From Syncephalis fuscata S228 (taxonomy: Eukaryota; Fungi; Zoopagomycota), in assembly GCA_025786725.1 (NCBI GenBank), contig JAHLTZ010000017.1, positions 372,001 to 436,000 of the forward strand: DNA of 64,000 nucleotides, written 5' to 3'. Positions 986 to 34,113 of this stretch are shown here, one piece after another. The position numbers and the translations under genes were made by a program. Every line of letters starts with the position of its first letter. Position 1 is the first letter of the stretch. The notes under the pieces are model-generated. The model was not told where the DNA came from. It ran no database searches and saw only the letters and a list, made by a program, of their open reading frames with translations.

Positions 986-3690
986 ATGCGACTTTTATCA
1001 ACTATTATCTCTACTCTTTCATTACTGGCGGTAATACAGACCAGTACGACAATTGGTGGTCCAGTGGGTCGTACAAGCTCAAGTAAGCAGTCGACTGCAT
1101 TACCACGCCTTTTGGCACGCGATACACCTATAGAAACCGTTATCAATGATCAGTCGACCGTTGTGGCCGAGCCCTATAATACATACGTTATCGAGTTTGA
1201 CGTGGACTCGGAAGTTTCTTCAAGCGACGCACTTAGTAATTTTCGTGGACAGCTCACTGCAGCCAATATCACCTACACTGAACGATATGTCTATAATACA
1301 GCACTGAAAGGCATTAGTTTGCAAACAACAAATGACCAATATCGTCAACTTAGTTCACTGGGCCTGGTCAAGAAAATCTGGCCTGTACATGTGGCAGTCA
1401 GTTCACCGGCTGTTGTTGTCGCCAATAGCCAAGTCAATCAACTAAGCCTGGTACATCAAATGACCGGTGTTACCAAAGTACAAACCAACCTTAAACTCAA
1501 TGGTAGCGGCATTAAGGTTGGCATTGTTGACTCTGGCGTTGATTATCGCCATCCAGCACTGGGCGGTTGTTTTGGTGCTGGGTGCCGTGTTGCCTACGGC
1601 TACGATTTCGTCGGCGATAAATTCGATGATACAAGCATTCCTGTGGCCGATAATGACCCTCTTGATACTTGCAGCGGACATGGCACTCATGTTGCCGGCA
1701 TTATTGGTGCCAACAGCGCAGTGGTAACAGGTGTTGCACCTAATGTTATTTTCGGTGCCTACCGTATTACTTCATGCAGTGGTCAAACATTTTCTGATAT
1801 CACTGTGGCCGGTATGGAACGTGCCTACGCCGATGGCATGGATATTATTAATCTATCGATGATCAGCGAGAATCCATGGCCCACATTTACAACGGCGCTT
1901 GCGGCCGAACGTATAACAGCTCTTGGTGTGCACGTAGTAGGTGCCGCCGGTAATAGCGGTTTACTTGGACTATGGCTAGAAAGTGCGCCAGGTGCAGCGC
2001 CAAGCGCTATGTCAGCCGCATCTTCCGAGAGCTCAAAGTATATGGCCTCGGTATTTACTGCAAGCACCGATCCGGACCGTGTTGTTGAATATGTTGCAGT
2101 AACAGCTGGTCTTCCATTGAATTTTACCGAAGTTGGTGTAGGTATTGCTCGAGGTAATTACCCGGCCAATGATACAAGTAGCGACAGTGCTTGTACACCA
2201 CTTACTGGCAATTATAGCAATATTATTGTTGTTGCTAAACGTGGCAACTGTTCATTTGACACGAAAGCACTTAATGCGCAGAACGCTGGCGCACGTCTAA
2301 TTGTCGTATATGACACAAGTGAAATCGCAACACCACCAGCCATCGACGATCCTAGTGTGACCATTCCATTGATAACCATTCCAAACTCGGATGGACTTGC
2401 CCTTTTAGCAAACATCAATGCTAATGGCACGGCTGTCAATATTACATTTGCATCCGAACCACGTCTTACCGATAATCCTGAAAGCGATTCTATTTCTACT
2501 TTTTCATCTTGGGGCCCAAGTCCTTATCTTGACTTTAAACCGGACATCACTGCCCCGGGCGGCAAGATCTATTCGACCTGGCTTACAAACGCTGGCAGCT
2601 ATGCGACATTAAGTGGCACTTCGATGTCATCGCCATATGTTGCTGGTTCAATTGCACTTTATTTGCAATACAAAGGAAAGGCTCAGTCAACGATTGCTAA
2701 AGTGCGTCAAGCTTTCCAAAACGCAGCCAGGCCCATACTTAATACTAAAGGCGACAAATTATACGCATCGACTGCGCGGCAAGGCAGCGGACTTGTCGAT
2801 GTCTACCAAGCATTAGCCGGCTATACACGCGTATCTCCGGCTCGTTTGGCTCTTAATGATACTGAACATGCAGGCACGACTAATCTGTTTGGTATAACAC
2901 GCTCATTTACCATCTACAATGACGGTTCGCAAACACGTACCTATAAGATTACCCATCGACCAGCAAATCAGTACGCAGTCTCGAATCGGATGGCAGTGCG
3001 GCTGAACAGCCATCTTTAAGCAACTATACAGCTGCCGTGCTTTATTTCCCGCCTATTGTTATCCTTGCACCTGGTAGCTCGTATACTGTCGATTTAACTA
3101 TTGTACCACCTATTATGTTGCCTGCTGCCGAGCGATGGATCTACTCGGGCTACATTATTGTTGATCCTAAGCCGTTTCCGTCCATTCTTATCCCCAGTGG
3201 TGTCGTCACCGAAAATGCTGTTCATGTTCCGTACATGGGCATGAAAGGCAACATGCATGACATTCTTCCACTTCAAGCAAAGGCAAATTATGTTAAATTG
3301 ATGAATCTACGCGATTGGCAAGAAGTACCGGCCGGTCAGAAAGGAACTTATACGTTTACATATTCAGATTTTCCAATGATGTATCTTCATATCGAGTTTC
3401 CAATCCGCCAAATCTACGTTTATCTTTATGATGCGGCAACTAAAACTAAAATTGGTACTTTGCCTGATGCCACGACGACTGATTATGCAAGAAATGATCG
3501 CCAACTCTTCCCTGTGGCCTATGTGGTTTGGTATGGATCAATCGAATCGGCTATTAATGGATCTATCAGTCAGGTTAAAAGCGGTGAATATTATCTTCGA
3601 CTTGCTGCGCTGCGTCCATATGGCGATGTTAAGAATGATGCCGACTATGACTACTGGCAGTCACCAAACATTATTGTTAAACGATCTTAA
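986..3690 (+). CDS. Secreted S8 subtilisin-like serine protease (signal peptide, I9-like propeptide, S8 domain with PA insert, Fn3-like C-terminal region); intronless; one probable assembly frameshift
   Basis: Catalytic motifs GIVDSG, GHGTHVAG and SGTSMSSP; PA motif KRGNCSFDTKALNAQNAGA. Adding one A to the run at 2965-2967 fuses the ORFs 986..3019 and 3037..3690 (PAKSVRSLESDGSAAEQPSLSNYTAAVLYFPP). Confidence 0.92.
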
Positions 3691-3919
3691 CTCATTTTTA
3701 GTTTAATACTTAATAAAAACAATCTCTCATATATTATTGTAAGTTGAATTAAAGTTTTAACTAATTAATGGACTTAAAGTTATAAATTATTTTTACAGCT
3801 AAGTTAATTGTTGAATAAAATGAAAAAAATCATGCATATAAAATTTTGATTAAACAAAATTAAAATAAAACCAAATGTTTATTACTAGGATTTGGACAAC
3901 TGAATGAAAACAGCTAAAT

Positions 3920-5953
3920 TCAGATTTGTAGTAATATAATGGCATCATTAATTATAAGTTGAGTAAACCGGTGCATTGATCGGTAGTTGATATGCGAATG
4001 AACTAGACGGCAACTACTTAGAGGTCTTGCCGTCCCAAATGTATATCTAAATGTATAGATTGACAATTCAGTCGTACTATCAATAGCAACGCCTTCGATA
4101 AACCGGTTAATCTATGTTTATAAATTTATACAACAAAATTCATGTAGTTAGTGTTTAAATTAATTATTATACAAGTGTCGCTTACTTTCTATTAATATTA
4201 GTTATTAAATATATACACCGGATGGTATATGTTTAGTGGATAGTTAATTAATGTATAGTGCTACTTACATCCTATTAGTCATTAAAAATACAAATTGCAT
4301 ACAATATGTTTAATGTATAATTAGTTACTATAAACGTTACTTACTATCTATTAATATAAGTGATTAAACATGTATATAGCATAACATATGTTTAGTAATA
4401 GTTAATTAATTAGTGTATAGTGCCACTTGCATTCTATTGGCCATTAAGCGTACAAATTGTATACAATATGTTAGTGTATAGTTGTTTATTAAAAAGTTAC
4501 TTACTCCCTATTAATACAAGTTGTTAACCATACAAATTGTATAACATGTATTTAGTGGAGGTTTAATTAATGTATATTGTCATCTACATCCTATTAATCA
4601 TTAAACATACAAATTACATACAATATGTTTAGTGCATAATCAATTATTATAAATGTTACTTACTATCTATCAATACGAGTATTATATATATATATATATA
4701 TATAATATATATATGTTTAGTAGATGGTTAAATGACGCTTAGTGTCACTTACTTCCTATTAATTATCAAACATACAAATTGTATGGTATATGTCTAGTGT
4801 GTAATCGATTATTATACAAATATCGTTTACCTCCTATTGATACAAGTTATCAAGCATACAAATTGCATGAAATGTGTTTAGTAAATGGTTAAATAATACA
4901 TAATGCCACTTACTTTCTATCAATTGTTAAATATGCAAATTGTATGTTATATATTTAGTGTATAATCGATTATTATGTGTTACTTACTCTCTATCAACGC
5001 GAGCGGTTATAAATATATATATCAATATTATTAGTGTATAGTTAATTATTATTTAGATGCCAATTACCTCCTATTAATATAAATTATTAAACATACAAAT
5101 TATGTATTATATGTTTAGTAAGTGTTTAATTAATGTACAGTGCCACTCACGAGCTATTAGTTATTAAGCATACAAATTGGGTGATATATATTTAGTATAT
5201 GATCAATCAATGCGCAATGCCACTTACTTTCTATCGGTCATTAAATGTACAAATTGCATGGTACATTTTTAGTTTACAGCTAATTACTATACAAATCCCA
5301 CTTACCAACTATCGATACGAGTAGTTAAATATGCAAATTATACGATATATTCTTAATGTATATTTGATCGTTATACAACCATCACTTACCCACTGTAATG
5401 CAAATTATTGAATATACAAATTATATGGTATTTGTTTAGTTTATGATTAAGCAATGTACAATGCCACTTACTAGCTATCAGTTGTTAAGCATATAAATTG
5501 CATAATGTATTTTAGTGCATGGCTAATTAACACACAGCAGCACTTACGAACTATTGTTATTAAACATACAATTGCATGGCATATTCTTAGTTATGGTTAA
5601 TTTTTATATAAATGTCACTTGCAAACTATTAATACAAGTTATCAAACACACATATTACATATTATGTATTCAGTAATAATTAATTAACATATAAATGCTT
5701 AATTACCTTCTATTAATGGCAACCCAGTAAATAAACGTAGCCCATAGCATACTCTAATACACAGATAATTAATGTAATGTCACTTACGATCTATTAACGT
5801 GGTTTTTCAGTGTATACATTATTTAATTAAGTGAATGACTGATTATTGTAATACGACATACCACGACGGCTAGAGTCGGCATAGCATCCACCGTAGCTGT
5901 GATGACTACCAAGGCCATAAAATGGTACATACGACGCCAATAGAAAACTTCAT
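3920..5953 (-). CDS. Candidate secreted-peptide micro-exon gene: signal-peptide exon, 21 three-nucleotide exons and a terminal exon
   Basis: Exon 1 is 5953-5862 (MKFSIGVVCTIFMALVVITATVDAMPTLAVV after adding one T at the run 5919-5922), donor GTATGT. It is followed by 21 units of YAG|NNN|GT/GC-donor between 5790 and 4186. The terminal exon starts at 4111 after ATAG. The end coordinate given is the phase-0 stop (TGA 3922-3920). Confidence 0.7.
4112..5861. repeat. Degenerate tandem array of about 74-89 bp units (each unit is an intron plus a 3-nt exon)
   Basis: Plus-strand motifs CACTTAC-NNN-CTAT, TTAAACATACAAATTG and ATGTTTAGTG recur once per unit in 21-22 units. Confidence 0.9.
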
Positions 5954-6088
5954 GCTGGTATTGATTTGTTAAAATAAACAAGTAGAATGAACAATGCAAA
6001 ATGCTAGGAATAAAATGAACAATGCAATGGTTTTGCAAAAGTAGAATGCGATGATGCTATCACTGGGTAGTTGTGTGTATTTTGTGGG

Positions 6089-6101
6089 CTATTTAAATAT
6101 A
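6089..6101 (-). promoter_or_regulatory. Possible TATA-like element of the micro-exon gene
   Basis: TATATTTAAATAG on the minus strand about 135 nt upstream of ATG 5953. The AT-rich background makes this weak. Confidence 0.25.
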
Positions 6102-7299
6102 CGTCTGTCCTAGAGAATTAGAAAATGTATTCTATCGCCTATACCCTTGAGGTGCAATGTGGCCAATAAAGTGAATTCACATAATAGCTAGAAGCGCGCG
6201 TACAACAATATACCAATGACGTAGCAGTATGCAATCTAGCTCTTTATTCTAAACATGTTCGGCAATTACACAAGTGATTCAACAATGTAAATGATTTAAC
6301 ACATATGTTGTAAAATATGTTATCGACTGTTCTTGCGCGGTTACACAATTCAGCAATGGCGCGCAAGCTCAATCTACTAGTTTTCCAAAACAAAAACAAT
6401 AAACTGTTGCACCTTTGATGTTGCCTTTGGTGTTATTTTCGCCGACAAATTCAGTTTCTAATATATTTATGAACATTGAAAAACACGGCTGCAATTCACT
6501 GGCACAAATAACATAATAAGATTGTATTTATTTACAATTCTTTAAACCACAAAAATGCACTGATCAGTTTTTCATGAATTATCTTGACATTTAATATTTG
6601 ATTATGAAAATGAACGGTTTATTTTTAGTATTGTACTACCAAATACTGCTAAAGGCTTTATCGCCAACAATTGATTGTTTTTATCAATTATTCATCGTTG
6701 TGTAATGCATTCTAATAATAAAACACTAGATTCGAGTATCAACGTCATCGATTCTTTGTTTATAAAGTGATGTAAAGGCAATAGAAAGCACCCACTAGGC
6801 CATCCTAGTTAAATATAGCTGATTTTGGGTGTACAACAGTAATATACGACATATCAATTGGCGACAATGATGTAAAAATAGTCTACTTGATAGTAACTCG
6901 ATGGAATAACCTGTTTTATTATGATTGTCATGGTTTGCAATAAGTGGACGTAGCGAATTGCATTGTTTTGAGTTGGACTAAAAGTTTGACTAGTCAACGG
7001 CTTTTAAAGGTATACGGCATTTTTATATTTAGAATACATTACTTAGGATATACCAGCTTCATGTTCAATATAATATTTATTATTAAATGTAATTATTAAT
7101 AAATTGTCTAATATGTTATTTGTGAAAAGCTATCTTTATTTAATTAATAAAAGAAATAATAATAATATATAATACTAGTTGTAATACAAAATCAAGTAAC
7201 TAAACGGCGTGTTAAAACGGCGTGAGAATAAACATAATGATCACTCTCGATAAACAGACACTGTAACAAATGAACGGCCTTCAAAAAAAAGTTATTTTG

Positions 7300-32899: not shown

Positions 32900-33339
32900 A
32901 ATTACCAGCAAACGTAAGTGACAAACTTGGATTCTGAAGAAAAAGCAACGTTTCGTGTTCGCGTCAATCTTTTACTTTGATTAAAGGTCAGATTTATTAA
33001 TATTAATTGACTGAGTCGATTCAGATTAATAAAAATGGCGGGAATTAGATTTGTCATTTAGTATTTTTGTAAATAACTGTCTAATTAATAGGCAATAGTA
33101 ATAAAAGTAAATCAATTATGCCATAATTAATACAACAGATTTATACGTGTTGTTAATATCTTTAATTGCCTAATGCTTTATAGGCGTTAAATATAAAGCA
33201 AACATGAGCATGTATATAGCAATTCCATCAAATAAAATTAAAATGAAATCATATGTTTACTACTAAAAGTCTGTACAGTTGGAGACAACTAAGCTCAAAC
33301 TTTTTTGATAATACAATGGTGTCACTAGCTAAAAGTTGA

Positions 33340-33730
33340 TAAACTAAAGCATTGGTTAGTAATTGGTATGCGAATAAACTAATCGGTAACTGTTAAACAG
33401 TATTAATTTGCCGGATGTACACCTAAAACATATAGATTGACAGTTCAATCACACTACCAATGACAATGTCTTGGGCAGATTGGCTAATCTATGTTATTCA
33501 TTATACAGCAAATTTCATATAGTTAGTGTTTAAATCAGTAATATATAAGTTCATTTATGATCTGTTAATACGAGTTATTAAGCACACACACACACCGGAT
33601 GATATGTATTTAGTATATAATTAATTACAGTACAGCGCCACTTACTTTCGATTGTTTATTAAGTATAAAAATTACACAGTACATTCTTAGTGTATAATTG
33701 ATTATTATACAAGTGCTACTTACTCACTAT
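33340..33730 (-). pseudogene. Truncated, decayed copy of the 3' end of the micro-exon gene (terminal exon plus 3 repeat units)
   Basis: Colinear similarity to 3960-4350 (e.g. TATGCGAAT, ATAGATTGACA, TAATCTATGTT, TAGTTAGTGTTTAAAT, ACACCGGATG); one donor (ATAAAT) and one acceptor (ATCG) are mutated. Confidence 0.75.
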
Positions 33731-34113
33731 AACACATCTCTATTGAGGTAATGGAAGTAACAAGAAGAGTAAATCGTAATAAATAAATTTTATTTTATTT
33801 TAAAACATACATAGTCATACAAAATATTACTAGTAAACTAATGAATATAGTAAGAAGACAGTAAAAATAACTACAAACCACTCCATATTAAAGACTAGTG
33901 TGATTATAGGATGTATCACCAGTACAACTATGGTTTTCCTCAAAAGTTGCCTATTTTAATATTCAATATAAAAAATTACCACGCTACTGTTTCTTCTTCT
34001 CCTTAAATTAACACACGTACTCACCTCTACAGCTTGTCTACATTGCTGCCTGTCATTAACACTGGTCATTGCCGCTATAACTGAATACAGATACTGCGTT
34101 GTTTAGTTTAACT

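Follow-up and report, generated by a model that had tools for sequence, protein, structure and literature searches.

The minus strand of the window analysed here, a 64,000-nt stretch of DNA from the fungus Syncephalis fuscata S228, carries what is probably a transcribed, spliceosomally processed gene for a 51-residue secreted prepropeptide, one member of a diversifying S. fuscata family. The gene is real and expressed, and it is unusual in its scale and in the product that it encodes: the variable part of the peptide is specified by twenty-one consecutive exons of 3 nt each. S. fuscata, a member of the Zoopagomycota, is an obligate mycoparasite of Mucorales.

The array extends on the minus strand from 5790 to 4186 and comprises 21 units, each consisting of a YAG acceptor, 3 nt and a GT or GC donor. 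The first bases of micro-exons 1-11 lie at 5790, 5709, 5625, 5550, 5474, 5392, 5308, 5230, 5153, 5070 and 4990, and those of micro-exons 12-21 at 4916, 4833, 4755, 4666, 4590, 4507, 4433, 4347, 4271 and 4188. The acceptor is ATAG in 20 units and ACAG in one, and the introns, 71-86 nt long, are homologous repeats of ~80 bp. In all these respects (triplets, coordinates, acceptors, donors and intron lengths) the array is as a sequence-only reading had described it. Under a first-order Markov model of this stretch, 0.6 YAG-N3-GY units are expected on average by chance, with a maximum of 5 in 2000 runs. When spacer lengths of 0-12 nt were compared within the array using a stricter donor pattern, 3 nt gave 19 matches and every other length at most one. 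Independent DNA runs match some stretches of the array, as well as the last intron, with 0-1 differences. TRF reports a 161-bp period over the array, and neither Rfam nor ARAGORN returned a match to structured RNA or tRNA within it. A stricter parser lost weak units, including the AAG and TGG of this gene, and runs were therefore taken as the union of two parses; the AAG that it dropped is an exon seen in RNA.

The introns display the hallmarks of U2 spliceosomal introns, namely a GT or GC donor, a putative branch point, an acceptor that is the first AG after the branch, and removal in RNA. A branch-point-like CTAA is found ~36 nt from the donor in most array introns of this gene, and past position 37 none of its 22 introns contains an AG other than the acceptor. 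Across 444 family introns, the zone between the branch motif and the acceptor holds 16 AG dinucleotides versus 729 expected, and the upstream part 210 versus 428. Such an AG-free zone before the acceptor points to spliceosomal scanning from a distant branch point and not to a satellite. In ordinary introns of the window the same distance is mostly 10-36 nt, as estimated by a crude scan of 25 unverified introns. In the array, the branch point would lie ~40 nt (36-50 nt) before the acceptor with no intervening AG, and this distance may allow spliceosomes to assemble to either side of a 3-nt exon. A weaker candidate branch site, TTAAT, is located 17 nt before the acceptor.

The array is framed by the parts of an ordinary gene, all on the minus strand. 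A TATA-like box at 6092-6101 is a candidate promoter element, and the 300 nt upstream of the gene are 99% identical to those of a sister locus, L021. The 5′-UTR covers at least 5954-6016, where RNA contig 7 begins (at 6016). The coding part of exon 1 (5862-5953), delimited by RNA and family copies, encodes a 24-residue signal peptide ending in VDA and a 7-residue propeptide ending in RR, plus one base, and is followed by a phase-1 GTATGT donor. The signal peptide was judged by eye from its hydrophobic N-terminus ending in VDA, and its pattern is kept in 22 aligned copies. The terminal exon (3878-4111), defined by RNA contig 6, which aligns over 3941-4111, and by the family pattern, consists of two bases, an in-frame TAA (4109-4107), the 3′-UTR and an AATAAA at 3883-3878. 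The same NN-TAA start, in the phase-1 frame, is found in many family loci. A secreted S8 subtilase with a PA domain adjoins the gene on the plus strand (986-3690).

Evidence for transcription and splicing comes from one run, listed as probably RNA, that was aligned to positions 2400-6400 of the window as assembled contigs at a depth of ~3. Its coverage is that of RNA, with reads over exon 1, the terminal exon and the adjoining subtilase and zero depth over 4276-4945. Contig 7 matches 6016-5870 perfectly apart from one additional base near 5920; there follow 10 letters, made up of a second missing G, the remainder of exon 1 and a single A, and finally 32 letters ending at 5627. In minus-strand order it reads exon 1, AAG, TTT and a GC-donor intron. 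Micro-exon 2 (AAG, 5707-5709) is joined to both exon 1 and micro-exon 3, micro-exon 1 (ATC, 5788-5790) is missing, and the first 27 nt of the weak GC-AG intron following micro-exon 3 are retained (TTT and this intron together span 5551-5625). This contig is a partly spliced intermediate in which micro-exon 1 was either skipped or lost through deletion of its unit in an allele. In contig 6 the alignment opens with the sixth letter, placed precisely at the terminal acceptor (4111), which is where removal of the last intron would put it. Three of the 22 junctions are seen in RNA, and splicing of all 22 introns in this copy is quite likely.

The same RNA repairs the assembly. Assembled exon 1 is short of two single bases that RNA contains, a G near 5920 and another near 5870, and the apparent break in the subtilase is a base missing at 2964 that RNA likewise supplies. 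Since all three frameshifts are absent from RNA, they are assembly errors, and single-base deletions are frequent in this assembly. Contig 7 derives from this locus or its allele, because its restored codon near 5920 is not the one found in L021 and L022, two sisters with 99% identity. Very high depth over exon 1 from sister contigs that are 90-95% alike hints at strong expression of the family, depth being no measure of level.

Because the exon-1 donor is in phase 1, the triplets are not codons: each micro-exon ends one codon and opens the next, so that one intron lies inside every codon. The initial description of the units as single-codon exons is corrected accordingly to triplets that straddle codons. 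A phase-0 reading, in which translation starts at the second ATG and every exon is one codon, was rejected, as the family donor is in phase 1, RNA restores that frame, and stop codons are depleted in phase 1. Translated in phase 1, the array gives DQVFPMVETREKR followed by GNRWKYR, and then a stop codon spanning the junction of micro-exons 20 and 21 (4186-4271). The predicted prepropeptide of 51 residues comprises the signal peptide, the propeptide ending in RR and 20 further residues, with a second dibasic site, KR, before the cationic heptapeptide GNRWKYR. The RR is near-invariant at positions 30-31 of family exon 1. Judging from these motifs, the peptide is predicted to be secreted and cleaved by Kex2. 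Both the signal peptide and the propeptide, with its terminal dibasic (Kex2-type) site, would come from exon 1, and the 3-nt phase-1 exons would spell the variable part, the main product being the all-included, collinear form.

Selection on this frame is visible across the family. In 21 non-redundant loci, stops occur at 0 of 340 adjacent phase-1 junctions versus 9.6 expected when exon order is shuffled within genes, and none of 5000 shuffles was as low. Phase-2 junctions in the same loci hold 24 stops versus 25 expected, and the middle base of micro-exons is T in 58% of cases, resembling a wobble position. Junctions that would arise by skipping are not depleted, with 6 stops versus 8.8 expected for one skipped exon and 7 versus 8.1 for two. 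Selection therefore acts on the all-included product.

This result bears directly on the function first proposed for the locus, a combinatorial library in which exon skipping generates many isoforms per locus and is itself the selected function. Every internal exon is frame-symmetric, as the proposal held, and the in-frame TAA opening the terminal exon terminates any skipped isoform; skipping nevertheless fuses half-codons, and 2 of the 21 possible single skips truncate this peptide. The sole informative RNA contig is without micro-exon 1, and the nank genes of Tuber melanosporum are reported to undergo extensive alternative splicing (PMC4986451, PMC3689799, PMC13449251). However, the exon could be absent because its unit is deleted in one allele or because the partly spliced intermediate contains an error, skipping would break the pattern of Cys-spaced peptides such as those of L048 and L049, and intronless sisters persist with open frames. 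Taken with skip junctions that retain their stops where adjacent ones do not, the library is unproven and, as the selected function, unlikely. The stop test is compatible with some skipping, as truncated minor forms may be harmless.

The gene encoding this probable prepropeptide belongs to a large family. The end of exon 1 with its phase-1 donor is present in at least 132 genomic copies (control, 0), and the genome scan for the unit pattern suggested by the sequence-only reading returned 2377 strict doublets (control, 0). Scaling from 31 parsed loci gives about 5,300 units and up to ~300 loci genome-wide, haplotype duplicates included; some of the apparent paralogues, those on small contigs, could be allelic copies. 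Family size is estimated at roughly 130-300 loci. Promoter region and 3′-UTR are common to all members, as is a signal-peptide exon that closes with RR and one further base. When splice-site models trained on 3-nt units were applied with exon length left free, 526 of 545 parsed internal exons measured 3 nt. The longest array, in L051, contains 43 micro-exons. Sister peptides are Pro-rich, Ser/Gly-rich, cationic or Cys-spaced, and the short family peptides tested had no match in Pfam, PDB or Atlas.

Some members carry the same information without introns. In L046 (881-1030, G000 C350), exon 1 runs without interruption through 19 more codons to a stop and on into the 3′-UTR; both this 3′-UTR and the promoter are those of the family. 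P0015, P0016 and P0025 likewise combine the same exon 1 with a peptide that is contiguous in the genome, and several further intron-free copies are suggested. These sisters look like spliced forms written back into DNA. With the RNA joins and the frame selection, they uphold the proposal that the array consists of spliceosomal 3-nt micro-exons of a secreted-peptide gene.

An exon-1 profile search found, among named matches, S. fuscata proteins only, so that the signal exon was not found outside this species in that search; a single-sequence homologue search with exon 1 gave no match. The public models tested are intronless sisters or continue differently after exon 1, and no micro-exon model was confirmed among them. 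In P0023 (KAI9594927.1, contig C79), residues 23-52 lack a contiguous genome match, and this protein may be a rare annotated micro-exon product. The same signal exon, followed by a long first intron, leads into ordinary longer secreted products at L042 (G000 C1, ~496.5 kb) and in P0022, P0024, P0026-P0029 and P0033, of which P0027 has an SVWC domain. The leader exon thus serves more than micro-exon genes. Broken copies exist as well, such as L029, and L032, L036 and L037 are missing the start ATG in the assembly, being either pseudogenes or assembly errors. On the minus strand of the window itself, at ~33200-33800, lies a 5′-truncated family remnant with a few decayed units and a terminal exon, without exon 1.

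Comparison of close relatives indicates how the arrays change. Near-identical loci differ by whole units in frame: L022 and L043 by one unit, L048 and L049 by eight, and L023 and L024 by a two-unit block among other differences. The present gene shares 96-100% identity with L021, which lies 33 kb away, in the upstream region, exon 1, first intron and terminal exon, whereas similarity between the array introns of the two drops to 65-77% and, past the first residues, their peptides are unrelated. Near-identical ends around a divergent array denote a cassette swap. In 56 pairs of sister units, chosen on their distal flanks and not phylogenetically independent, exon sites differ by 21% and proximal flanks by 5.9% (P=3e-9). 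Changed exons differ at 2-3 bases in 11 of 20 cases, which implies conversion or recombination as well as selection. Changes at the middle base, mostly synonymous, are as frequent as other changes, and fast exon change may result from conversion rather than from positive selection. Diversity arises mainly at the DNA level, through gain and loss of units, cassette swaps and fast exon change, to which skipping may add.

Array introns also harbour a SINE-like element of ~300-400 bp with a T-rich end, a tRNA-like other end in most copies and a target duplication of ~15 nt. In at least five genes it is inserted in an array intron, directly behind the donor; carriers are L022 (in its second gene), L034/L044, L035, L045 and L050, and the element is absent from near-identical L021. 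It looks like a retroelement targeting array introns.

Similar architectures occur beyond S. fuscata. A triple-unit pattern matched at least 120 metagenome stretches. Many of these were discarded as plain tandem repeats with an invariant triplet; others have variable triplets and intron sequences unrelated to those of S. fuscata. One lies inside a gene for a PNP_UDP-NACHT-ankyrin protein (L069, which with L122 represents ankyrin NLR arrays), others upstream of HET domains (L062, L065) and others upstream of kinase domains on very AT-rich contigs (L133, L135) that we take to resemble Glomeromycota genes. In the AT-rich arrays, phase-1 stops number 1 versus 6.9 expected (P=0.001). AT-rich array contigs further include L073, L082 and L100, the kinase link being found in two of the AT-rich set. 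Additional 3-nt exon arrays with unrelated introns lie on the fungus-like contigs L059, L102 and L110, and RIP-like decay is seen in L105, L123 and L130.

These arrays are relevant to the idea that introns proliferate selfishly or neutrally, an intron and 3 exonic bases duplicating in tandem in an introner-like manner, with the resulting peptides merely tolerated. The introns are indeed homologous 80-bp repeats under concerted evolution, similar arrays in other fungi arose with unrelated intron sequences, and the SINE-like element exploits the arrays. Yet the arrays that were examined belong to a single family of secreted peptides in which promoter, signal exon and 3′-UTR are conserved; the frame is maintained, and divergence is faster at exon sites than in introns. 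In other fungi the genes that carry arrays encode HET, NLR and kinase proteins, and families of this kind typically diversify. Proliferation is accordingly improbable as a full explanation and may account for the origin of the arrays rather than for their maintenance. A non-coding minisatellite or pseudogene in which splice-like motifs are simply part of the repeat unit, as the doubly frameshifted assembled exon 1, the TRF period and broken copies such as L029 might suggest, is extremely improbable given micro-exon joins in RNA and phase-1 stop depletion, and the pseudogene is rejected on RNA that is free of the exon-1 frameshifts.

Fungal Kex2-processed prepropeptides and small Cys-rich effectors typically combine a signal peptide, a propeptide, a dibasic site and a short hypervariable peptide, often rich in Cys, Pro or Arg, and known families use ordinary exons or repeated cores. 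The present gene shares the dibasic site after the propeptide, but the members tested match no such family. Its exon structure does have a fungal precedent, contrary to the initial reading: the nank genes of Tuber melanosporum, which encode NACHT-ankyrin NLR proteins, are reported to splice tens of codon-sized micro-exons (Iotti 2012, PMID 22289772, via PMC4986451, PMC3689799, PMC13449251). Both systems are fungal, belong to expanded families, string together tens of consecutive codon-sized exons and likely act between organisms. In nank, however, alternative splicing of the exons serves to diversify a receptor inside the cell, whereas here the entire variable portion of a very small secreted peptide is built from them, in the Zoopagomycota and without NACHT or ANK (both of which metagenome locus L069 does have), with selection on the all-included order and variation at the DNA level. 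Micro-exon genes (MEGs) of Schistosoma comprise 35 genes with exons mostly of 15 nt (range 6-81), introns of 0.1-5 kb and proven alternative splicing (PMC10526429). They too encode secreted parasite proteins with signal peptides in a multigene family missed by automatic annotation, with most coding sequence in short frame-symmetric exons; in contrast, the S. fuscata family has near-uniform 3-nt exons, homologous-repeat introns of ~80 nt and 130-300 loci, and the named matches of the exon-1 profile search revealed no sequence homology to MEGs. Coprinopsis cinerea likewise splices exons of ≤3 nt, with 27 3-nt exons in 26 genes (PMC12230235), but these are isolated, compared with an estimated 5,000 in tandem here. 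The gene works like a cross of Tuber nank and a Schistosoma MEG and belongs to neither family. Our literature search found no description of micro-exons in Zoopagomycota, Syncephalis or mycoparasites, nor of a secreted-peptide family built of codon-sized micro-exons.

In the prepropeptide gene proposed here, each codon junction would lie in an 80-bp homologous sleeve, such that unequal crossover or gene conversion could add, remove or swap residues in frame. The same sleeves would let paralogues exchange whole arrays, and leaky skipping might yield minor variants. The likeliest role is that of rapidly diversifying secreted effectors or antagonistic peptides directed against or toward host fungi or competing microbes, as suggested by the signal peptide, dibasic sites, family expansion, hypervariability and lifestyle; a part in parasitism is plausible, though far from secure. 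A bolder and more doubtful conception is a residue-addressable system, in which an intron per codon in hundreds of genes allows recombination and regulated skipping to edit secreted peptides residue by residue and so equips the parasite with a peptide library, a design that would have evolved repeatedly in genes of non-self recognition (HET, NLR, kinases) across several fungal phyla.

The metagenome arrays suggest that the Tuber case is not isolated and that fungal annotation misses such genes widely. In S. fuscata, ~1.5% of the genome (an estimated 0.43 Mb) is a hidden secreted-peptide family largely missed by public annotation. With 20-40 consecutive 3-nt exons, distant branch points and ordered intron removal, it puts the geometry of the spliceosome to an extreme natural test. 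The family also supplies candidate effectors for mycoparasitism in the Zoopagales, for which none was found described in the literature. It further offers a setting in which to test whether introns may be retained in the role of recombination sleeves that let single residues change in frame.
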